Position numbers and translations under genes: made by a program. DNA of 64,000 nt from Vitrella brassicaformis CCMP3155 (Eukaryota > Protista > Chromerida), in NCBI GenBank assembly GCA_001179505.1, contig CDMY01001019.1, positions 1 to 64,000 of the forward strand, written 5' to 3'. The notes under the pieces are model-generated. The model searched no databases and had not been told where the DNA came from. It worked only from the letters and a program-made list of their open reading frames with translations. Of the stretch, positions 16,806-59,413 are shown one piece after another (the first letter of the stretch is position 1; each line of letters starts with the position of its first letter).

Positions 16806-18242
16806 TCAGTCTAGGGCTATGTCCAGCCAGTTGCGGAACACCCTCTCTGCATCGGGCCCCATCACCTCACGCACCGCCTTCACTGTCTGGGGGAACCTGG
16901 CGGCTCCCTTCTTGCCATCCACCGGTCGCTCTGTCGTGTAGAGGCTGGCATCGGCAAAGGTGGGGTTGCTGCCGATGATGATGGTGATGTGGGTCTCGAA
17001 TGTCTGTCCTGGTTGGTCGCCATGGAGCACTATCATGCGGTGGAAGAGTCCTTCTCCCACCCTATGGCCCGTGCTGATGGTGTGGCGGCCCCAGATGGGC
17101 GGCTGCTGGATGGTCAGGTGCCGCTGAAGAGAAAGGCAGATTTGACAATGAGTGAGTGGGGCAGCTGGTGAGGTAATCGTGTTGGGCTGTGTGGCTGACC
17201 AGTCGGTTGTAGCGTGGGGCGTCGTTGTCCGGGTTGACATACTGGACCGCGACCGGCGACCCTCTATGACGCATCCTGGTCAGACACATCATGGCAGAGC
17301 GGTGCAGCCAATGTGGCCGTGTGTGTCACTCTGCTCATTTTTCTCACTCATCCAACACAGCGTCGCGAACTGAAGCATAGACATCACCTGCAAACAAACA
17401 CACGCGCACAACTAAATGATCCATTGCCCATAGCTCTGCCCCCCTCCCTCACCTAGAAACTCACACACGGGGTTGGCCTCGTCGTATCCATTGCGGAAGG
17501 GATGGTCGGCCGGCAGCGTCTGCAGAGGGCGAATGACCAGCAGCGCCCTACCCAGCCGCTCCTCGCCATTGCTGCGGCGCTCGAGCGTCACACCGATGTG
17601 GCGGCCGATGAGGGAGAGCTGCCGCAGCGCCTCACACCGCCCGTCGAAGACCGCCCGGCTGCCCACCCCCTCCACATCAGCACTGCTCAGCTCTATCGGC
17701 AACGTCACGCCTCCCCGCCCCTGATGCTTGGCCACTCTGATGATGGGCTCCCACGCCGCCCACTCGCCGCTGTTGTCGATGATGTACACCAGGTCCAGCA
17801 GCAGGTCGAGGGATGTCAGGTCAGGAAAGAGGGTGATGATGCCTTCGATGCCCTTGGCGGCCAGCTGGGCGTCTATTTTTTCCTTGACGCGCTGCAGGAG
17901 AGTGCTCTCGATGGTCTCCTTGTTATGGTGCAGCAGCAGCTGTTGCTGGGTGAGGGGGCCGCTGGCGATCTGTGCGATGAGTGCGCCTCTGTTGGCCCCC
18001 GAGCGGGCCACTTCGCTGATCAAAAAGGGTAGCAGCTCTTGAGGCCTGGTGGGGCGGCCGTGGCCCGACAGACATTGCCTGACGGGTAAAATGAACCAAC
18101 ATGAAGAGAGCGAAGAGCCACATCGAGGCACCGTGGCGCATTTTGTATCTCTGTGTGTGCGCCCTTCATTCACCTGTGGCTGCGGCAAGTCGGCTACATC
18201 AGCAGCAGCAGCAGCGGATGAAGATGACGCTGCAGCCGCCAT
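16806..18242 (-). CDS. Lineage-specific family A, copy 1 (hypothetical protein)
   Basis: Shares core YIIDNSGEWAAWEPIIRVAKHQGRGG...GSRAVFDGRCEALRQLSLIGRH...LPADHPFRNG and the C-terminal exon (QPPIWG...VLHGDQPG...TTERP) with the copies at 27.2-29.1 kb and 33.0-34.5 kb. Confidence 0.75.
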
Positions 18243-18849: not shown

Positions 18850-19844
18850 TCACACGTCTTGTTTGTCGATGCCCTTGACGTCGATGGCCGGCTTGGGCTC
18901 CTTCTTGCCCTCGACCCGCTCGATGATCTGCTTCTCGGCCTCCCTTTCCAGGAATTCGTTGAGCCCTTTCGCCGTGTCGGCAAAGGCATCACCGAGATAC
19001 TGAGCACCGTGGTTCTCGGCCCACTCGGCAGCCGCGCGGTAGATCTGCTTCTTCTTGACCAACACCTCCATCGCTGCACCGATGTGACGAGGACAGAGAG
19101 AGAAAGGGCACATGGATTGACTGCAGCAGAGATGGGGTGGGTGTGTCGGTGCCCACTACTTACAGGGATTGGCCGAGTCGGCGTAGGTGTCGAATATCTT
19201 CTGCCAGGCGTCGCAGCGGCTCTGCCAGGCCCAGTAGCGACGCCTGGCGCGATAAGGGTCGCCACTCTCGGCTACTTGGTACTTGTCAGGATGGGCCGAC
19301 ATATCGGCCCACGCCTTGTTCAGCTCTCTCTCAGCTTGTTCGAACCTCTCAATGGTCTGGGTCCCTGCACCCCACCACACATGCACAGCCATCGATCTCT
19401 GCGTCAGTCGCACATCTGCGGCCGTGTTTGTGTGTCGCTCGATGACCGACCGTTGGGGTCAACTCGGCGCTGACGAATTGCGAGGATGTTGATGAACATT
19501 TCCCGGCGCCTCTCCAGCCTCTCGCCGAGCCCGATGGATGCAAAGTCCGAGTCAGTCCGGTTACGCCAGGCGTCGCCCGCCATTGCCCAGTAGGTGTCCA
19601 CCAGATACCAACACAACGTTGCTGCATGGACACACACACACAGACAGACAGACTCTCAGACAGACTCTCAGACAGACAGCCACTTTGAGTCTTCTAGCCA
19701 TTGGTGTAGAGCTGCTTCATCAGCATGTCCTTCATCGCGTCGTCGCCGTCAGCACCAGCGCGGGCCTTCCAGGGTGGGTAGCCACGGTCGCTGTCACGAT
19801 CACCGAAGACCGACTCGACCACTGCATCACACACAGACACACAG

Positions 19845-19875
<31 letters not shown>

Positions 19876-20215
19876 TGGACAGTCGCCCCTCAGACACGCA
19901 CTGGCTGGTGGTCTCTTACGTGCCTCTGGGGAGCCCTCCTTCCCATAGGGCATCTCCTGCACACAGCCATGACCAACACAAACACACAAACACATCACAC
20001 ACACTCTTTGAACACAGAGGAGATTCAATCTTCATATTCTTTCTCACCCATGCTGAGAGAATCGTCACGTGATCAGGGCGATGCCGCCGCAGATAGCCAT
20101 CACGGCGCAGCGGCCGAGGGGCAGGGGCAAGGAAGGCGCTCTTCGCCAGCTGCGACGAATCAGCGAGATCTGCGAGGAAGGCGAACAAGTGGAGAGCCGC
20201 CACCCACACAAACAT
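18850..20215 (-). CDS. Hypothetical protein with probable bipartite plastid-targeting leader
   Basis: Six phase-consistent exons. Leader MFVWVAALHLFAFLADLADSSQLAKSAFLAPAPRPLRRDGYLRRHRP (hydrophobic signal, AF motif, Arg-rich transit-like segment). Mature part helical and Trp-rich. Confidence 0.7.
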
Positions 20216-20857
20216 CCTTGGAGAATGGGAGATGAGGGACACGCGTTGCGAGCCGAGCTTGCCGATCGTGCCGTTGCAGCATTCCGCTGCAAACAGTCAT
20301 CGACAAGCGTGGTTTCGCGGCTGCATGCGTCCGCCCCATTGCAGGTTGCCGGAGATGTTCGTTTCACGGAGATCAATAATTTGGCGCTGCCGTGAGCTGA
20401 AGATGCCTGCAGCCTTCATCCCATCCTCATCGGTAAGGCCACACGATAGATATCCCAATGAAGAATGCATGAGCCAGTGGCATCGCTGAGGCAGCCAGAG
20501 AGAGATCACACAGGCAGGCAGCCAGGAGGCAATACAGCAGCGACAAACACACATGGCTCACCCCCCTGGATGGATGCGTGTCACTCCTCTGTCAGGTTTG
20601 ACGAGAGGCTTAGGCTGTACAGACGGCTGGCGGCAGCGCTGACGCCATCGGGCCTCTTCTCTTGACGATATGTCATTTGCAGCTGCGTGGAGGCTGCCGA
20701 CAATCACCTGACGAGTGAGAAACGAAGAACACAGACACACACAGGATGGATCGATGGATGGATGGATGGTCGCTTCTTCTGCTCTGCAGGCACGATTAGC
20801 CCGACTGAGGAAGAGTGCAAGAACTTAATTGTACAGGTGGTTGATCGTGTCATCCCG

Positions 20858-21660: not shown

Positions 21661-21835
21661 GTGCCACCTGCAAGCCAAAACCAACACATTCGCCTCATTC
21701 CTGCTGCTGCATGTGTGGAGGATTCTCGGAGGATTCTTCTTTTCTGCCGTCTTACCGAACGCATCGAAAGTATCTGCTGCAGAAGGTCACGAGAGCTCCC
21801 ACGGCCATCATCTGCACTCTGCCCATCCATCTGTC
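21661..21835 (-). pseudogene. Opposite-strand 5' fragment of a family B gene (DGQSADDGRGSSRDLLQQILSMRS exon + intron)
   Basis: Near-identical to 32589-32725 and similar to 26747-26880. Confidence 0.75.
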
Positions 21836-22726: not shown

Positions 22727-23130
22727 TGTCTGTTAGTGACGGGAAGCGCGCACGCGTGGCCGCCAGCCCAGCTTCTAGGTACATATGACATCAACCTCCC
22801 TGAAAACGTGACGACGGCTGGTTGGTGTCGTTTTCAGGTGGTTCGACTGGCGCACGTGATGGTGCGGCAGTAGAACAACAGCGGAGGGGCAGCTCAATTG
22901 CGTCCCTGCCGTATTTCTCTGTGTCTATGTGCGTGCCAGGGGTATAGCCGTCTGTGTCTGCCGGCCTTGCCCGAAGGCGTCGCGGGCCACATGGGGCCGT
23001 TTGATTTGACCACCATGACGGCCGTTCGCCTGACGCGCGTCAACGAAGATCAGCAGGGAGCGCCAGCCCACCGACGAGACTTTGGCCTGTTCTGGCGCTT
23101 CGCTGTGACGCAAGACGCGCATGTGATGGA
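22727..23130 (+). pseudogene. Truncated family B/F-box-like fragment
   Basis: VSVSDGKRARV exon, then GYSRLCLPALPEGVAGHMGPFDLTTMTAVRLTRVNED...GLFWRFAV, homologous to GYGDPCLSGLPKEVFNHIGSF...GLFRHFTV at about 31.6-31.8 kb. No downstream LRR exons. Confidence 0.6.
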
Positions 23131-23597
23131 TGGATGGATGGATGGGCGGGCGGGTGTGTGCATGTCAGACAGACGCACCCACATCCATCGATGACCTCTC
23201 TCTCTGCCGCTTGTGTGTGTGTGTGTTTTTTTATGTGAACCGTATCAGTCATCACAGTGTAGTGCAGGACAAGTAGGTCTTCAATAGATAGGCTTTTGTG
23301 CATGCACTCAAAAATGCGTCTATGTGTGTACTCACTCGTCCGTCGCAATGCAGTGACGCTGCTGCCTCCTTTACTGAATCCACCCATCGCTTTGTGTCAT
23401 CGAAAACACACACAAAAGGTCGTCACCGAAAAACACACATCGAAGAAGGCCACATGGGGACAAAAAACTCAATCTAAGGGGAATCCAAGATACTCTGAAC
23501 ACCAGCGGACAAATTCAGTACCGAACCCCTCCACAGGGCACGGGTCTACATAACACAAAACAACCATCGTTTCCTTCGCCTGCCCCCCGCCTCCACA

Positions 23598-24730
23598 TCA
23601 CTGATTGCCTTTACTTACCGGCTTATCAGTGATCTCCTCCACCGCTCGGTCAGCAGGAAGCTCAAAGACGTACTCGTGGAACAGCAGCCGGTCCTCGATG
23701 TCTTCGCCTGTCTTCTTCTTGGGCCATTGCGGCTTGATCGAGCCGCCTTGTGGGATGGCCCACACGATGCGCCAGGTCTTCTCGCCATCCCCGATCGCTG
23801 GGCTTGTCCTCAAATTGTCGATCAACGTTTCGTTGAATCCGCGGGCTGAGTGCTCGCTGTCGACGGTGACTTGAATGAGGTAGATGACGTCTTCAGCGCT
23901 GTCGATGTACAGCGAGTCGATGACCGGCCAGTTCTTGGACTCGGGCACCCAGAAGCCAGGCTTGCGCACGTTGCCATAAGGCTTCTTCGGGAGTTTGCTG
24001 CGACGGAACAGACGGGGCTCACTGTCCTGCTGGGTGGTGTCCAGCGAGACCCGGATCACATCCGTCAGCGTGTCCTGCGGCGTCTGCATCCTTGACGCTC
24101 GAGAGTCCTTGCCCACACGTTCCATATGGTGGTCGAGGGGCTCCAGACTTATCGGGCGCCTGGTCACAGACAGAAACTCATGGACGAGGCCCTCAAGCAG
24201 CTCCACCTTCTGCCCGGCGATCTTTCTGGGGTCCATGATGATGTCGAGCTCATTTCTCAGCTGCTGCTTGCTCAGCTTGCGGACGAATCGGCCGAGGATA
24301 TAAGACGAGCGCCAGACGACCTTCCCAAAGGAGTAGGGGCCGCTGACCTTGGGATCGGGATCCAGGGACATAAGAAAGGTCTCAGGGACATCGTCAGGTT
24401 TGGCCTCTGGGGCTTCTCCGGTCCACAGTCGGACGACATCATACCGCAAGTTGTCAAGGGCGAGGTCCACATCCTTCTTGACCTCAGGCAGAGGTCTCAG
24501 GTAATCGCGGATGATGCCACCCGCATAGGGACGCTTGTCATCCAGCTGGTCGAGCCACTCAGTGCCCTCAAGGGCCTCAGAAACCTCCTCCTCAGTCCAG
24601 GTGGGCATGACCAGATTGAGTGTGAGCCTTTTCTTGAACTCGTTGTAGTTACCCTTGCGCGCCGATGCAGCCAGCACGACGCTGCCCGGCCACAACTTAG
24701 TCAGGGAACCTTCAAAGCCTGCACCACACA

Positions 24731-24766
<36 letters not shown>

Positions 24767-25428
24767 CTCACTCTCACACACGCAGGCGTGCAGTCCCGTT
24801 CCCTCCCGCCCTGAACTAACCGTCGATCAGCAGCCAGTTGCGTCGTAGTGAGTCCACGGGCTGCGTCTATAGCGACTGGAACAACGTCTCTAGCGGGTTG
24901 CGAATTCTCACAAAGCCGTCCTTCGACAGCTCATACACCTTCCGGTCGACATTCGATGACCTGAATGAAAACCAGGAGGAGCGAACAGGTCACATGATCA
25001 CGTCTGGCCGCCAGCAAGTCGTTGCTGACTTACCTATCGGAGTTGTCCACGAACCAGATCTTGAAGTTCTCGCCTCGGTGCATCTCGGCTTTCAGCACGG
25101 CCAAGAAGAAGAAAAGGAACCAAGTCAAGCCGACTCCCGATGAGCCACGCAGCAGAGCGCGAAAGTACCCCCGATTTGAGGACGTCTCCTTGTTCAAGTT
25201 CTTATGCCCGTCCATAATGATCTCGGCGATGTCAACATAGGCCTTGCGCACCAGCAACTTCAGACCCTCCGTGAGAGGTATCTTGATTGGTGTTGCCTTG
25301 AGGTGGATGGGATCCACTGACTCCCAGTATGGTTGCAGCTCGAGTGGCCCTAAGAAGATCGGGATCGGCGGCGGGTTGGCTGTCCGCGCTTTCACGGAGG
25401 CCTGAAAATCAGACAGACAGACAAACAA

Positions 25429-25466
<38 letters not shown>

Positions 25467-25697
25467 CCAATGAATGCACAAAAATGCACTCATCACGCCT
25501 GCCGGTCACGTACGTACCTCCTCCTCTGGCTCCTCTGCGTGAAGGGCAGTCGCCCTCTGCACGGGGCGATGAGTCGGGCGTTGCAGGCGAGCCGCCAGGG
25601 GGGCAAGAAACGTGAGACGAGCCGATTGGCGCACGCCAGCCACCCTATGAGCGAAGGCAAGGCACGCAGTCAGGAGAAGGGAAAGCGCAGATGCCAT
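23598..25697 (-). CDS. Crinkler/RHS (CR)-type protein: degenerate P-loop NTPase + restriction-endonuclease-fold domain, with signal/transit-like leader
   Basis: Walker A-like LLRGSSGVGLTWF, WLLIDG, VLAASARKGNYNEFKK, VMPTWTEEE, YAGGIIRD and C-terminal FWVPESKNWPVIDSL...IYLIQVTVDSEH, the motif series typical of CR NTPase-REase proteins. Leader MASALSLLLTACLAFA...TFLAPLAARLQRP...ATALHAEE. Confidence 0.8.
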
Positions 25698-26172
25698 AGC
25701 GGTGACCTGTGAATGAATGCAGAGAAAGCGCAAAACACGACGCAAGTGAGGTGTCATCCATCGACGCGCAGATCTCCTCACCATCATAGCCCCGGCAGCT
25801 CCGCCTCCGCGAGCTCAAAGCTCGCAGAGCGGAAGGAGAGGATTGAGCCGATGCCATTTGCGATTGGGTGTCAGGATGGTGAGCCGGCCAGCACTGCCGA
25901 TCATGCATTGCATCTCACAGACACGTCGAGCATCACGCACAGAACATCCACCAACGTCACACACATCACACCAGCCGTCCGCGGGTGGATCCATCACTAA
26001 AGGCACCCCTCCCTCCCTCCCTCCCTCCCTCCCTCCCTCCCGTCTGCTTGTCTATCAGCTCTCTGTCTACCCATCCATCCATCCATCTCACTGGATCAGT
26101 CAGTCAGCCCCTCCCTCCCTCCCTCCCTCCCTGACCACAGTGGTCACTTAGTCAGTGTGTGATATCAGGTAT

Positions 26173-27006
26173 TTATTGCTCCCCCATCATGCTGCCGCCA
26201 TCTGCGCCCTTCGCCGTCTGCTCGCGACGCCGCCTCACCGCCCGTCTGTCGTCGGCCGCCATGTCACCCTCTCCGCCATCGTCGCCAGCCGATGCCAATG
26301 ATGCGGCCGCCTTGCGCTTCTCGCCACGATTGCCATCACCACAACCACCATCACCAGCACCAACAGCAGCAGCTGAGGCGGCCGCAGCGGGGGCGGCAGA
26401 AGATGACGACACGCCAGCAGACACCAAAGGGACACTAATAGGCACCTGAACACATAAAATGAATGGTCCACCTGAGTTTGTGTGTCGGCCTGTGTTATTG
26501 ATATGACATTGCAGCCTTTCCTGTGGGTCGTGGTCAGCGATCTCTGCCAGCTGCTTGGTGAGGGTCTCCAGGAGGGTAGACAGGCTGCCGGCCGACGCAC
26601 CATCCTGCAGGCAAAAGACGAACACACGAATGGCAAGAGAGTGCTGCTGCTCGGCTATGTTGTGTTTCGTGCGGACCAGTGTGCTGTCAGCTTGTGAGGC
26701 TATCGTGCGCTCTGCCCCGTCAAGATCAGACACCAACTGCGAGGCGACCTGCAAGCCAAAACCAACACACTCACATCTCTAATGCTGCGTGTGTTGAGCC
26801 CTCTTCTCTCCCGTCTTACCGAACGCATCGAACGTATCTTTTGCAGGAGATCACTAGATGAGCTACCGTCGCCACCCGCCCCGCCGCCCTGCCCACCTAA
26901 GTCACACAGCCAGGACACACAAGGCATGACACACGGGGGCTGTCCATCAGGCGCGGCGTGTTAGACCTGCAGCGGATGCCGGGCCGTCCCCGCTGTCTAT
27001 GTCCAT
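26173..27006 (-). CDS. Family B header-module protein, copy 2 (short, low-complexity C-terminus)
   Basis: Exons MDIDSGDGPASAA / GGQGGGAGGDGSSSSDLLQKIRSMRS / VASQLVSDLDGAERTIASQ / ...SLSTLLETLTKQLAEIAD / Ala-Gly-rich last exon. Confidence 0.65.
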
Positions 27007-27200: not shown

Positions 27201-29059
27201 TTATTGCTCATCCGTATACCGCCCCTTCTTGTGCTTGCCTGTGGTCTGCTCGCCTCCCTGGCCACCACCACCAGCAGCTGGGGGGAGGGATACGTCCAGC
27301 TTGCTGCCGAATGCCACCACAGCGTCGTCCCCCATCACCTCCTGCACCACCGTCACTGTCTCGGGGAACCTGGCCGCACCCTCCCTGCCATCCACCGGAC
27401 GCTCCGTCGTCCAGAGGGAGGCGGTGGCATGGTCGGGGCTGCTGTAGATGAAGATGTGTGCCTCGAATGTCTGTCCCGGCTGGTCGCCGTGCAGCACTAT
27501 CAAGCAGAAGAAGGATCCTGCTACTGCCCAGTGTCTGGTGCTGATGGTGCGGCAGCCCCAGATGGGCGGCGGCTGAGTGGCGAGCTGCCGCTGAAGAGAA
27601 AGGCAGATATGACACTGGGTGAGTGGGGCAGCGGGTGAAGTGCTTTGTGTGTGTGTGTGTGTGGGAGGGTGTGTGGCTGACCAGTCGGTTGAACCGTGGG
27701 GCATCGTTGAACTGGTAGACGAGCTGGGCCGCGACCTTCGACCCTCCCTCACGCATCCTGACCGATCAGACACATCACGGCAGAGCGGTGCAGCCAATGT
27801 GTTTGTATGTTCGTGTGTATCATTCTGCTCATCCCTCCCTCTCACTCATCCAACACAGCGTCGCGAACTGAAGCAAACTCAGAAGCTGCAAACACACGCA
27901 CATTCACACGCAACCAAATGGTCCCCTTCCACAGCTATCCCCCCCTTTGCTCACCTCCAATCCGACAGACGGGATTCTTCGGGTCGAATCCATTGCGGAA
28001 GGGATGGTTCGCCGGCAGCGTGTGCGGTGGCCGGATGGTCAGCCGAGACCCGCCCAGGCACTCCTCGCCATCATCGTCGCGCTCGAGCGTCGTGTCGAGG
28101 TGGCGGCCGATGAGTGAGAGCTGCCGCAGCGCCTCACACCGCCCGTCGAACACCGCCCGGCTGCCCACCCCCTCCACATCAGCACTGCCCAGCTCTATCG
28201 GCAACTGCCCGCCTCCCCGCCCCTGATGCACAGCCACCCTGATGATGGGCTCCCACGCCGCCCACTCGCCGCTGTGCTGGATGATGCACAGGAGCTGCAG
28301 CAGATGGCCGACGGATGGCAGGTCATAGCTGAGGATGTCCTTGAGGCCCTTGTCGACGAGCTGTGCATCGATCTGCTTCTTGACATAGGCCTCCGACACA
28401 CGCTGACTGCCGAGTGTGCAGGTGCGGCGGAGGCGGGCGAGCCATCGGGGCCGAGCAGGGCGAAGACGACGTCACGCTCGACGTCCGGTGACAGGTCAAA
28501 CAGGCCAATGTGCTGGCCGGCCTGAGGGGAAAGGCGGCAGAATGAGAGATATGCGTGGCTGTCTGTGTGGCTGTTTGTGTGCGTGTGTACCGTGTTGCCG
28601 TCGGACTCATGCCGGGGCCTCCTCTCAACTAATATGAAGCCATCATGCACCTGCACACACACACACACACACACAAAAGGTGGATCCCTCAGCAGTCACC
28701 AGACCAATGGGCACATGAGAATGCCTACCTGTTGTCTGTGCGGCGATGTGTTGGCCTCGCGCGGCACCACGACGACGAAATTCTCTCGCCCTTCTACTTC
28801 CCTCATCGACACTCTCGTGCCTCCGCCGGTCTCCTCAGTGCGATAGACGTCGGCCTTGACCCACTCCTGCTCGCCCTTCTCTCGATTGGCCGTCATCATC
28901 CACACACGAGTGCCGGTCTTGTAGCGCTCGCGGGACGACGGCGGCATCTGATGGATGGATGGATGGATGAACCAAATGATTGAGTGAATGAGCTACACGT
29001 ACCTGTGGCTGCGGGAGGTCTGCAGCAGCTGCAGATGAAGATGAGGCTGCAGCTGCCAT
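27201..29059 (-). pseudogene. Family A copy 2 with SH3-like and F-box-like N-terminal modules; 1-nt frameshift
   Basis: LFDLSPDVERDVVFALLGPDG then shifts frame near 28445 relative to copy 3 (ggc tcg ccc gcc vs ggc ctc gtc ctt ctc cgc cgc acc tgc). Downstream core is intact. Confidence 0.7.
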
Positions 29060-33035: not shown

Positions 33036-34544
33036 ATGATTGAGCTCGCAGCGCAAGAGACGGATGATGAAGAAGCGAAAGAAGGGCCCATTGTCGCCTT
33101 CAGCAGCTGCCTCCAGCGCTGCTCCCTCGGCCAACCAGCAGCATCGTTTGTTCGACCTGCCCCAGGACGTCCAGCGAGTCGTCTTCTTCCCTCTGCTCGG
33201 CCGCGACGGCCTCGTCCTTCTCCGCCGCACCTGCCCCCTCGGCACCCACCGTGTGTCTGAGGACTACATCAAATCGCAAATCAACCGGCTGCTGGTGGCC
33301 AAGAACATCCGCAACATCATCAGCTATCGGGTGCGGCCACGTGTGCGGATGCGGCCCATGGCCTTCCTCCTGCGCCTGCTGGTACACACGTGATGGACGG
33401 ACTCCGGCTCTCATATTCTGTGTGTCTGTTGTCATGTCTGTGTGTGTCGGCAGTACATCATCGACAACAGCGGCGAGTGGGCCGGGTGGGAGCCAATCAT
33501 CAGGGTGGCCAAGCATCAGGGGCGGAGAGGCGTGAAGTTGCCGATAGAGCTGGGCAGTGCTGATGTGGAGGGGGTGGGCAGCCGGGCGGTGTTTGAGGGG
33601 CGGTGTGAGGCGCTGCGGCTGTGACGTTCGAGCGCGACCCTGTCACGTCACGCGGTGTAAGGCGCTGCGGCAGCTTTCACTCATCGGCCGCCACATCGGC
33701 ATTGAGCTCTCACCTTCTGTGTGTCTGTTGTCATGTCTGTGTGGACAGTTTATCCCCGACCCCAATGGCGAGGAGCGGCTGGGTGGGGCGCGGCTGGTCA
33801 TTCGCCTCCTGCACACACTGCCGGCCGACCACCCCTTCCGCAATGGATTTGACGAGGCCAACCCCGTGTGCCGGTTTTCTGGTGAGGGCGGGAGGGAGGG
33901 AGGACTGTGGGCAATGGACGACCTGGCTGCGTGTGTGTATTGCTGTGTGCAGCTGATGACTATGCTTCAGTCCGCGACGCTGTGTTGCATGTGTGAGAGG
34001 GAGGGATGAGCAGAATGACACACACGAACACATAAAGACATTGGCTGCACCGCTCTGCCATGATGTGTCTGATCAGGGTGCGTCGGGGAGGGCCATTTGT
34101 CGCGTTCCAGCTGGCCATCCAGTCCGACGATGCCACACGCTTGAACCGACTGGTCAGCCACACACTCACACACGACTACCTCACCAGCTGTCCCACTCGC
34201 TCATTGTCATATCTCACTGTTCTCTTCAGCGGCAGCTCGCCACTCAGCCGCCGCCCATCTGGGGCTGCCGCACCATCAGTACGTTCCACCGTCCGGCAGC
34301 AGGAGGAAGCTCCGACCGCACCATCGTGCTGCATGGCGACCAGCCGGACCACCAATTTGAGGCTCACATCTTCATCGACAGCGTGCCCGAGTGTGCCATG
34401 ACCTGGCTCCAGACGACAGAGCTCCCTGAGGATGCCCAGGAGGGTGCGGCGGCGCCCCCCGAGACAGTGAGGGTGGTGCGGGAGGTCATGGGGGACGATG
34501 CACAGGTGGTGTTCGGCAACAAGCTGGCCATAGCCGTAGACTAA
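33036..34544 (+). pseudogene. Family A copy 3 with F-box-like header; disrupted by a local rearrangement with in-frame TGA
   Basis: LFDLPQDVQRVVFFPLLGRDGLVLLRRTC header and shared family A core. TGA at 33622-33624 lies inside a duplicated segment. The 3' flank (gattcatctttcaactctcgagtgt) matches the copy 1 flank. Confidence 0.7.
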
Positions 34545-56626: not shown

Positions 56627-56777
56627 GATCTCTGATCACGGCAGATCTGTGTCCACACGTCAACCGCCTGTCCCCCGAATCTCTGTTGTCACGCTCGTCT
56701 TCGCAATCCTCGCCGTTTCCCTCCCCGGCGATCGCTGGAAAGCTCGCAGTAGGGAAAGGCCTGCTAATGCAGTGAAG

Positions 56778-59413
56778 ATGGAGATGCATCAGCTGGACAG
56801 GAGGAAGCCGGTCAGGCGGAGAGCACAGACGGCTCTCACGCTCATCAGCCTCGCAGCGGCGTCACTGTCGTGCGCCCAGGCCTTCCTGGTGCAGCCGCAC
56901 AGACACACGAGGACGCTCAGGTGGGTGCGTCAGGAGATGACAGATGCTTGTGCTTGGTTCAAACACGCTGCTGGTGTGTGTGACTGTGATGTGTGCAGGA
57001 TGGGCGTGGCTGCTCCCCCCCCGGCCGTGAGGCAGAAGCCGGTCAAGAAAGACTGGCTGGGGAGGGTGAAGGAGCCGCCTGAAAGTACGCCTGTGCAGAG
57101 ACGGACACACAGATTGACACGTGTGCAATGCATATGATGCTCTCCTCTGTCTGTGACTGTCTGTCTGTCTGTCCGTGTGTGTGTGTGTGTGTGTCTGTGT
57201 GTCTTGCGCAGGCAAAGTGAGCGAGCCGAAGCCCACGCTGAGAGAGTGGATGGACGCAAGCATCAGGGAATGGATGAACGTAAGCAGCCGAGTTATGATG
57301 CGAGCGCGCTGGTGATGTGCATCATCCTGTCTGTCCTTCACGTGTGCGTGCTGCAGGTGAGGGATGCGCGCATCGGCGTGTTGATTCTCAACCTGGGCGG
57401 CCCGCTGATGGAGAACGACGTCGAGAGCTTCTTGTTCAACCTCTTTATGGACGGTGAGTGGGCAAAACAGACCAGGCAGAACATATCGTCCTTCGTGTGC
57501 ACACACATGGATGGATGGGATGGATGCAGGTGAGATCTTTCGTTTGCCCGCGGCACTGCGGTGGCTCCAAGAGCCGCTCGCGTACCTCATCTCAAAGGCC
57601 AGAAGTGAGTGATCCGAAGCCATCAGCCAACAGGGGTGGGTCGAGATGCGCGCGCGCGCGCGCGTGTTCAGGTCCCAAGACGAGCGAGGCGTATCGGTCG
57701 ATCGGCGGCGGATCGCCCATACTGGGATACACACAAGCACAGGTACGCTATTGTCTGCACGCTGCTTGCTCCATCTCGTCTGCACATACTCGTTCGTGTG
57801 ATGACGTACGTGTCTGTGGCTGGCGTGTTGATGTGTGGTTGGTGGAAGGGTGAGGCGTTGACGCGTCAGCTGCGTCGGATGGGTTACGACGCACAGACGT
57901 ACATCGCCATGCGGTACAGCGCCCCATACACACGGACGGCAGTCACCGAAATGCTCAGCGACAATGTCGATGTAAGTGTCACTGGCTCCACACACTTGTC
58001 CACACGTCGATGTGTGTGTGTGTGTGTGGTGGATGGTTTGGCGCAGGGTGTGGTGATACTGCCGCTTTACCCCCACTTCAGTGTGTCGACCAGCGGCAGC
58101 TCCATCAAGTACGGTGGGGTGGACACACAGATTGACGCCTCTGATATGCAGACGTATGATGCACTCACCTGTCTGTCTGTCTGTGTGTGTGTGTGTGTGG
58201 GTGCAGTATCCTGAAGAAGTACTCCCGGATGTTCATCGACATGCCCCACACGGTCGTGACGGAGTGGTACGACCGACCCGGATACACCAAGGCCGTCGCC
58301 AACCTCATTCAAAGAGTAGGGATAGATAGAGGGATGGAGGGATGGAGGGAGGCACACACGAGCGAAGGCATTGCGTGGCGTGTTGTGTTGTGTTGTGTTG
58401 TTTGGTGTTGTGTGCAGGAGATCGACTCGTTCACCGCGGACGAGAGAAGGGAGGGCATACACGTGCTCTTCAGTGCACATGGGGTGCCAAAGGTCAGTCT
58501 GACGCGCGCGCGCGCGCACACACACACGCGCGCGCGCGCGCGCACAGAGGACTGCATAACCATGTGTGTGTGTGTGTCGTCAGAGTTACATCCAGAACGG
58601 CGATCCCTACCAGGACCACATCGTCAAGACCATCGACACGGTCAAACGGCAGTACTCTGCTGGTCGGTACTCACGCAATGCAATCCACTGACTGCACTCA
58701 CTGGGAGACGCATGACGTGTGGCATGGAAGCCCATGTGTGTGTGTGTGTGTGTGTGTGCAGATGTGTCGACGCATCTGTCGTACCAGAGCAAAGTGGGGC
58801 CGGTCGAGTGGCTGCAGCCGTACACCGATGACATGATCGAGTCCCTTGCTAAGCAAGTACGATGCATCCATCACACAGACACACACAGAGACTCCCATTT
58901 GTGTTGATGTGGTTCCCATGTCATGTGTGCAGGGGGTTAAGAACCTGGTGGTCGTGCCGATCTCGTTTGTCAGCGAGCACATTGAGACACTCGTGAGCAC
59001 AGACACACACACACACACATGGATATTGTGCCGACCTGTGTGTGCGTGTGTCGGCTGACAGGAGGAGATTGACATCGAGTACCGCCATCTTGCCCACGAG
59101 AAGGGCATCAGGTACCAATGCTTTCGAATCCAGCGAGAACACGTGTTTATGTCTGTGTGTCTGTGCGCAGGAATTGGCGGCGCGTGCCGGCGCTCAACGT
59201 GGATCCCCTCTTCATTAAGGACCTTGCAGAGCTCGTTGCCGTAAGTCCACACACTCGGCAAGTGTGTGTGTGACCCACATCAAGTGTCTGCGTGTGGTGT
59301 GGGGTACGATGTATGTGTTGTGTGTGCAGGAGTCTCTCGATCAGCCGGTGCTGTCCCTCAACGAGGTGTGCTTCAAGAAATACAAGACGTCCTTCGAGCA
59401 GTACGACGAGTGA
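56778..59413 (+). CDS. hemH: Ferrochelatase (protoporphyrin IX ferrochelatase), plastid/cyanobacterial-type, with bipartite leader
   Basis: IGVLILNLGGP, YRSIGGGSPI, YIAMRYSAPY, VILPLYPHFSVSTSGSS, LFSAHGVP, NGDPY, SYQSKVGPVEWLQPYT, VPISFVSEHIETLEEID, RRVPALN. Leader TALTLISLAAASLSCAQAFLVQP. Confidence 0.97.

Follow-up and report, generated by a model that had tools for sequence, protein, structure and literature searches.

A minus-strand gene of Vitrella brassicaformis CCMP3155 was analyzed in the first 64,000 nucleotides of contig CDMY01001019.1 (assembly GCA_001179505.1), which are referred to as the window. The locus corresponds to the annotated protein CEM38962.1 (599 aa; record P0001) and comprises five coding exons running from 25697 to 23474. 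It is most likely a transcribed, decaying paralogue, i.e., a transcribed pseudogene: exon 3 carries an in-frame stop codon and the gene shows further signs of relaxed constraint. The copy belongs to a subfamily of seven paralogues restricted to Vitrella. Its body resembles the Crinkler/RHS (CR) class, with a P-loop nucleoside triphosphatase (NTPase), a helical linker and a domain of restriction endonuclease (REase) fold, and is preceded by a signal-type leader. This reading as a whole, a decaying window copy of a Vitrella CR subfamily with a signal-type leader, is considered probable.

Genome searches covered the 72.7-Mb, 1064-contig assembly, in which the window is C1019:1-64000. The exons of the window copy were searched singly, and work on whole proteins used the database records P0001 (window locus), P0002, P0003 and P0087 (paralogues) and P0006 (open reading frame (ORF) of a transcript). 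Evidence from RNA and DNA sequencing runs was used at the level of contigs.

Nonsense codon in exon 3

The TAG at 24867-24869 stands where three close paralogues read Lys, Lys and Glu. CEM38962.1 does not contain it: comparison of P0001 with the genome showed that the annotated model excises 24867-24938, leaving the protein without 24 residues. The residues homologous to the excised stretch are coding in P0006, the full-length cDNA of the paralogue C308, and for this reason the 72-nt intron of CEM38962.1 looks like a fix made during annotation. No joint skipping 24867-24938 was reported in the RNA contigs, whereas two other introns gave joints. One contig of run X6 passes from exon 2 into 24911-24961, beyond the donor of the annotated intron.

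The stop codon could be bypassed if 24867-24938 were spliced as annotated, giving a 599-aa protein without 24 residues of the NTPase core. The stretch is divisible by three and of the size of the local introns (73-115 nt for the other introns of this gene), and P0001 uses it. However, the homologous stretch is not only coding in P0006 but conserved as protein in three paralogues, and its deletion would deprive the NTPase of core strands located between the two Walker motifs. With the missing joint and the contig reading through the donor added, such a bypass is improbable. An assembly or sequencing error at the TAG in an otherwise intact copy, which the entirely open exon 4 would suit, was judged very improbable, as no other letter occurs at this place in contigs from two DNA runs (X3 and X4); these runs may be the assembly's own source. 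X3 and X4 were taken as DNA because a contig spans intron 4. Owing to the nonsense codon, the normal mRNA of the window copy would encode no more than the leader and a truncated NTPase of ~150 residues.

Constraint on the close copies

Over the body, the pairwise ratio of non-synonymous to synonymous substitution rates (dN/dS) was 0.65-0.95 among the close copies, and their introns (79-94% identity) were as conserved as their exons (83-91%). Both values indicate weak constraint. Exon 1 is 92-95% identical at the DNA level; since synonymous and non-synonymous sites are equally similar, this looks like homogenisation rather than strong constraint on the peptide. ORF-breaking lesions were found in two of the three copies in which Leu replaces the Walker A Lys, namely the TAG of the window copy and a frameshift in the sister copy C1019b. 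A preliminary description of this DNA had named a domesticated factor among several options and had pointed out a dead Walker A. Its account included neither the TAG nor the gene end beyond 23598. The lesions, the dN/dS values and the equal conservation of introns and exons all speak against a domesticated protein that still works with an NTPase inactivated on purpose.

Transcription of the window copy

Runs X6 and X1 behave as RNA: an X6 contig joins 23545 to 23619, with intron borders that read CT..AC on the plus and GT..AG on the minus strand, and X1 provides a matching loose end. The X6 contig spans 22939-23545 joined to 23619-23758 with zero mismatches and includes the copy-specific 3' untranslated region (UTR), to which paralogues align over only ~27% at ~76% identity. 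Because an RNA contig covers this region without mismatch, the window copy is transcribed. The gene extends past the end of the ORF at 23598: RNA contigs lack the intron 23546-23618, beyond which a short last exon follows. In minus-strand translation, the splice phases of all exons agree with one another.

A second X6 contig without intron 2 shows junction letters of a sister copy (N-S-C-G), so that the exon 2-exon 3 junction was counted as family-level evidence only. The joining of the leader exon to the NTPase exon, presumed in the preliminary description, was confirmed in paralogues: P0006, an MMETSP transcript ORF, holds leader and NTPase in one frame and agrees with P0002 at every one of the 616 residues (100% identity), and a loose RNA contig end at 25523 represents the exon 1-exon 2 junction of the paralogue C307 (..E/AFAEAIPP; here and below, a slash marks a junction or cleavage point).

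In the region 22861-23758, X6 and X1 contigs reach 22939 and are then spliced further towards ~22860, where they go on for 255 letters or more; the depth of contigs in this region is ~8x that of the gene body. This pattern could be due to a long spliced 3' UTR, a 3' bias or an overlapping downstream transcript.

Paralogues in the Vitrella genome

Searches with exon 4 and with a profile of the C-terminal domain gave seven loci, i.e., the window copy, C308, C307, C1019b (C1019:67.8-70 kb), C990, C372 and C534, and one fragment (C452). The body proteins of the four close copies (window, C308, C307 and C1019b) are 70-74% identical. C308 is intact, with a canonical GSPGVGKS, the Walker A Lys codon AAG and a full-length cDNA, and is regarded as the working representative of the family. 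C307 is intact apart from Leu in Walker A, whereas C1019b combines this Leu with a frameshift in exon 4. The change from Lys to Leu (TTG) is thus found in three of the four close copies; Lys is retained in C308, C372, C534 and C990.

Exon 2 of C307 and C308 is almost identical (synonymous divergence dS 0.007), yet the Walker A codons TTG and AAG differ at two adjacent bases, which points to gene conversion over a short tract or to selection acting on the Lys codon. C1019b (C1019:67839-69864) shares its scaffold with the window copy, from which it lies 44 kb away in the opposite orientation, and is matched by RNA contigs too. Its annotated model, CEM38985.1, bridges the frameshift by skipping ~28 residues.

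NTPase domain

In place of an intact GxxGxGK[ST], the window copy reads GSSGVGLT, as the preliminary description had stated. The residues G66, G69, G71 and K72 of Walker A (alignment A4) are invariant in 39 family members. Loss of the Walker A Lys abolishes nucleotide hydrolysis, and the Leu which the window copy has in common with two sister copies would be expected to have this effect. The remaining motifs NWLLIDG, AASAR, VMPTWTEEE and AGGIIRDY are in register with the family consensus (WxLxD; S/T-S-P; YMPxW..E; GGxPR).

For the structure, residues 75-384 of the paralogue P0002 were modelled with AlphaFold (predicted local distance difference test (pLDDT) 88). Foldseek gave 149 PDB matches at E ≤ 0.001 for this paralogue model (best E 1.7e-5), led by the STAND and AAA+ ATPases NLRP9, NSF, RFC, Avs4, RPP1, ORC and CED-4. 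The model points to an NTPase fold of the STAND/AAA+ kind, with a helical or winged-helix region after it.

REase-fold domain

The nuclease-type residues named in the preliminary description are present: VELLEGLV, VIDS, IQVT and H of the window copy fall on the near-invariant family columns E14, D106, Q121, T123 and H128 (alignment A3). They form a family signature E..D..QxT..H, however, and not the PD-(D/E)xK triad. The AlphaFold model of the C-terminal domain (pLDDT 88, predicted template modelling score 0.87) has the core fold of the PD-(D/E)xK superfamily (alpha-beta-beta-beta-alpha-beta), in which one strand begins with the conserved Asp and the following strand ends in Q-x-T; these are the places of the canonical motifs II and III (PD..(D/E)xK). 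With VIA-align, the model matched nearly exclusively PD-(D/E)xK nucleases, whereas Foldseek against the PDB gave nothing better than E 0.38. The assignment of the fold therefore rests on VIA-align and on Atlas neighbours.

In the catalytic D...(D/E)-x-K triad, Asp is present and motif III is replaced by Q-V-T in the window copy and Q-x-T in at least 90% of the relatives; the family further retains a Glu in helix 1 and a His following strand 3. As this signature is family-wide, Q-x-T is not a loss that occurred in Vitrella, and since it differs from the canonical triad, nuclease activity is not implied. The core fold and the coupling of a nuclease to an ATPase are shared with prokaryotic defence PD-(D/E)xK nucleases (McrC of McrBC, N.BspD6I, and the nuclease domains of Avs3/Avs4 and Cap4).

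Relationship to Crinkler and RHS proteins

A profile search of 1.84 billion representatives returned only Vitrella proteins below 1e-30 and, in addition, 79 distant eukaryotic relatives (E 5e-10 to 1e-3), which include sequences of Voromonas pontica and Physarum. The distant relatives share G-x-P-G-[IV]-G-K-[ST], W-x-L-x-D, Y-M-P-x-W..E and G-G-x-P-R, and in the C-terminal part G..FE, P..D, Q-x-T and H. In a Pfam scan of 46 aligned sequences (P0002, the paralogue P0007 and 44 distant hits), RHSP was found in 4/46 (1e-5 or weaker) and nSTAND3 in 9/46. By ESM features, P0002 scored 0.96 against clusters including 'Crinkler (CRN) family' with RHSP/RHS_N; the score against trypanosomatid RHS was 0.92, and that against oomycete Crinkler-header proteins 0.89. 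In the Atlas, the C-terminal model had as neighbours clusters carrying the Crinkler header or RHSP (template modelling (TM) score 0.57-0.64). The profile hits, the ESM similarity and the two AlphaFold models support the preliminary description in assigning the body to the CR class, as a module of P-loop NTPase, helical linker and REase-fold domain.

According to PMC5289972, citing Zhang et al. 2016, CR proteins include a C-terminal architecture of NTPase, helix-turn-helix and REase, and are typically delivered toxins with N-terminal delivery headers. The order of NTPase, helical linker and REase fold and the shared motif set correspond to CR effectors as presented there. In contrast, the Vitrella family lacks the ubiquitin-like Crinkler header with its LxLFLAK motif; PF20147 gave no match in the exons or P0001-P0004, and LTFLAP of the window leader is not conserved, the paralogues reading TFQIA. 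Instead, there is an exon of 48-60 residues encoding a putative signal peptide and an F motif of plastid-like type. Furthermore, the host is a free-living phototroph, and in the window copy the Walker A Lys is lost and the frame is interrupted by a stop codon.

Trypanosomatid RHS proteins (PF07999 RHSP; PMC6393297) resemble the Vitrella family in ESM similarity and in the C-terminal fold, which matches a Euglenozoa RHSP cluster (TM score 0.58). They are likewise multicopy and fast-evolving, with many pseudogenes (PMC6393297). They differ in being nuclear, associated with chromatin and transcription, and equipped with an RHS_N domain (PF20445; PMC6393297), and no hot spot of retroelement insertion was seen at the window copy. 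Among the papers searched, none named both Vitrella and Crinkler.

Leader exon and plastid-type motif

As described preliminarily, exon 1 encodes a signal-type header without acidic residues, containing FLAP and ending in ATALHA-EE. The hydrophobic core covers residues 4-16, with a Kyte-Doolittle(11) maximum of 2.40 compared to 2.57 in PsbO and 2.07 in ferrochelatase. Up to position 54 there is no Asp or Glu, and the part from residue 17 to residue 54, with 7 Arg and 3 His, forms a basic, acid-poor stretch like that of transit peptides. A-F-A/H would fit the -3/-1 rule of signal cleavage. According to PMC4217693, a transit peptide has Phe at or near its start, followed by three uncharged residues, a requirement which is looser in Vitrella (PMC6668581). 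F30-L-A-P (residues 30-33) fits this residue rule, but the -3/-1 rule is poorly followed just before it (R-L-T/F).

The leader is 85-92% identical in three close paralogues, and a genome-wide search for its reuse on other genes matched only the four close CR copies. Three distant paralogues have differing first exons of the same build (C372, MSASSLFAVCLISAAFVDGRRLPFPVAFIAPPGA..; C990, MAALLAFLLLVAANAGRPKLPGAAFIEPTAVRLGLRAHRH..; C534, MAKVAFCFFVVVVHGKRHAPPAPAPAAFLMPAEVP..), with the same intron position E/GTACGT in C372 and C990. All seven loci (7/7) have a leader exon in which a hydrophobic core is combined with F-[LI]-x-P, the latter located at residues 25-30 (FQIA in C307 and C1019b). The survey of leaders proposed in the preliminary description thus showed that the header is not special to the window copy. 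The Voromonas relative has no such leader.

Seven Vitrella plastid proteins, i.e., PsbO, ferrochelatase and five light-harvesting complex (LHC) proteins, served as controls; their leaders show sites of the type A/F-[VL]-x-x-P (Table 1). A PF00485 (PRK) locus, whose plastid leader was not readable, was left out of this set. Leaders of red-lineage complex plastids (ASAFAP/FVAP; PMC6668581, PMC4217693) and those of the CR family resemble each other in a hydrophobic, signal-like core, a Phe after small residues and before three uncharged ones, and a basic, acid-poor continuation rich in Ala, Pro and Thr; F-[LI]-x-P resembles F-V-P-x-P of Vitrella LHC proteins and PsbO. They differ in the distance between the hydrophobic core and Phe.

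A likeness to two further leaders in the window had been pointed out preliminarily. The gene at 18850-20242 (minus strand), with no family assigned by Pfam, has a leader (MFVWVAALHLFAFLADLADSSQLAKSAFLAPAPRPLRR; ..QLAKSAFLAPAPRP) in which a core and A-F-L-A-P are arranged with the same long spacer as in the CR leaders. With ferrochelatase, the F motif is shared but not the spacing from core to Phe. The ferrochelatase gene (~56700-59100, plus strand) encodes a textbook bipartite leader with a long basic n-region, a hydrophobic core and ..SCAQA/FLVQPHRH.

Upstream of the putative start codon, the C308 cDNA ORF begins 21 codons before MASALS (MTSHARCRVVRFLCIHSQVTA), and the annotators' 5' intron, present in two models, is not removed there. 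MASALS was favoured as start, since the frame upstream of it is not conserved among the copies.

Fate of the leader-bearing proteins

The ancestor of the subfamily would already have had a separate first exon encoding a signal peptide for the endoplasmic reticulum (ER), A-F-[LI]-x-P and a basic, acid-poor stretch. From this ancestral exon, we infer that intact members would enter the secretory pathway, and ER entry of leader-bearing proteins is likely, judging from the leader sequences. From there, the proteins could reach the four-membrane plastid or the periplastid space, or be secreted; onward delivery and secretion appear about equally likely. Plastid import based on the leader is plausible, and delivery of intact members to the plastid or periplastid space has nearly an even chance of being correct. 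Secretion or another endomembrane fate of these members is a serious possibility, though short of an even chance.

More specifically, the family may consist of secreted or vesicle-delivered conflict effectors comparable to oomycete Crinklers, with the leader being a signal peptide and pro-region whose likeness to plastid leaders is incidental. This would agree with the typical role of CR proteins as delivered toxins with delivery headers (PMC5289972), with a hydrophobic core not followed by the F motif at the expected distance, and with fast evolution (dN/dS 0.65-0.95), which suits conflict genes. On the other hand, A-F-[LI]-x-P persists in leaders which are otherwise unalignable and matches the cleavage context of the seven plastid proteins, the acid-free, Arg-rich stretch of 38 residues is transit-peptide-like, and the ubiquitin-like LxLFLAK header is absent. 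This alternative was kept as a tentative one.

Import of a full-length window protein into the complex plastid, where its REase domain would act on plastid DNA or RNA and the NTPase without Lys would serve as scaffold or regulator, is decidedly improbable. All paralogues have the plastid-like F-[LI]-x-P leader, the window copy is transcribed and retains the C-terminal signature residues of the family, and the Leu variant also occurs in the otherwise intact C307. Nevertheless, the TAG interrupts exon 3, two of the three Leu copies are broken, dN/dS is near 1 with introns as conserved as exons, the QxT signature lacks the canonical acid and Lys, and the F motif of the leader has an atypical spacing.

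For the window copy, decay of a transcribed paralogue is the preferred reading: it would still be transcribed and spliced despite its lesions. Several observations weigh against this reading or its parts. Exon 4 (372 codons) has remained open, and none of the six near-invariant residues in the C-terminal domain has been lost, so that the lesion may be recent or the copy not dead. The TAG-bearing 72-nt stretch has GT..AG ends and a length typical of Vitrella introns, and in-frame removal of 24867-24938 may take place in some transcripts, the RNA evidence being at contig level. Pfam RHSP and Crinkler gave no direct match to the Vitrella proteins (exons and P0001-P0004), for which only hits below the cut-off were obtained (DUF1948, E 0.016; NACHT, E 0.21). 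In all seven paralogues, 13-15 residues separate the hydrophobic core from the F motif beyond it, compared to ~6 in the seven plastid controls. Finally, in-frame upstream ATGs occur in three copies, and the C308 cDNA retains the upstream stretch unspliced.

Table 1. Features of the window copy (window coordinates) and leaders of Vitrella plastid proteins used as controls. A slash within a sequence or joint marks the cleavage or joining point.
Feature	Position	Strand	Remarks
5' region with in-frame upstream ATGs	25698-25787	minus	MMVRRSARRWMTPH...; annotators' 5' intron ~25708-25786
Exon 1, leader	25517-25697	minus	ATG 25697-25695 opens MASALSLLLTACLAFAHRVAGVRQSARLTFLAPLAARLQRPTHRPVQRATALHAEEPEEE; exon end ATALHA-EEPEEE
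Intron 1	25402-25516	minus	GTACGT..CAG, phase 0; holds (CAGA)n microsatellite
Exon 2, N-terminal NTPase part with Walker A	25034-25401	minus	72-74% identical to paralogues
Walker A GSSGVGLT	25123-25146	minus	Lys position is Leu, codon TTG 25128-25126
Intron 2	24961-25033	minus	GTAAGT..CAG; absent from one RNA contig of run X6, perhaps partly sister-copy
Exon 3, NTPase strands between Walker A and Walker B	24821-24960	minus	homologous 46 residues coding in cDNA P0006
Annotated 72-nt 'intron' of CEM38962.1	24867-24938	minus	GTGTAT..TATAG; takes out TAG and 24 codons
In-frame TAG	24867-24869	minus	exon 3, between Walker A and Walker B-like NWLLIDG
Walker B-like NWLLID(G)	24822-24839	minus	in exon 3
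Intron 3	24719-24820	minus	GTTAGT..CAG, phase 1; holds (CA)n/(GA)n repeats
Exon 4, remaining NTPase, helical linker and REase-fold domain	23619-24718	minus	VMPTWTEEE 24585-24611; AGGIIRDY 24501-24524
REase-fold C-terminal domain	23631-24233	minus	E in LLEGL 24183-24206; D in VIDS 23901-23927; QVT..H 23850-23876
Intron 4	23546-23618	minus	GTAAGT..TAG, 73 nt; RNA joint 23545/23619
Exon 5, coding part	23474-23545	minus	TRALWRGSVLNLSAGVQSILDSP and stop, then 3' UTR
PsbO leader			..CLSTHA/FVLPRP; plastid control
Ferrochelatase leader (window)			..SCAQA/FLVQP; plastid control
Five LHC leaders			..HHAAA/FVPSP, ..AADTA/FVPPA, ..VAHA/FVPSP, ..WCAA/FVPNA, ..VTSA/FIVPL; plastid controls

Surroundings of the gene

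Around the gene, no terminal inverted repeats or target duplications were found, only microsatellites and a dispersed element. As transposon ends are missing, the window copy was not called a mobile element. The dispersed element (~130-400 bp) has 14 genomic copies, of which 26559-26955 and 21663-21825 flank the gene and C1019:66711-66907 lies ~1 kb upstream of the sister copy. Its minus-strand reading resembles an exon end (..DLLQKIRSMRS/GTAAGA). Another multicopy gene ('gene X') is present at 16813-17888, 27286-28384 and 33453-34535; its copies are 72-77% identical, one of them inverted, and read ..GEWAAWEPIIRVA.HQGRGG..LPIEL.SADVEGVGSRAVFDGRCEALRQLSLIGR. Neither this gene nor the one at 18.9-20.2 kb was matched by Pfam. 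Given the copies of the dispersed element and the multicopy gene around it, the window copy sits in a patch of local duplications.

Implications

The database protein CEM38962.1 rests on an unsupported 72-nt intron which masks a stop codon, and the window copy should be treated as a probable pseudogene. CR modules are known as toxins that pathogens deliver and, in trypanosomes, as chromatin proteins of the nucleus. In Vitrella, a photosynthetic relative of apicomplexans, replacement of the usual header by a signal and plastid-type one would widen the range of delivery headers. That the intact members C308, C372 and C534 are true plastid or periplastid imports is rather unlikely on present evidence; they would be the first CR NTPase-nuclease modules delivered into an organelle. 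If true, a conflict-type nuclease module would reside inside a complex plastid, and the imported C308, C372 and C534 would act on plastid nucleic acids or in conflict between host and organelle. The long-spacer F-motif leader, which also occurs on the unrelated 18.9-20.2 kb gene, would then mark a distinct sorting class of chromerids.

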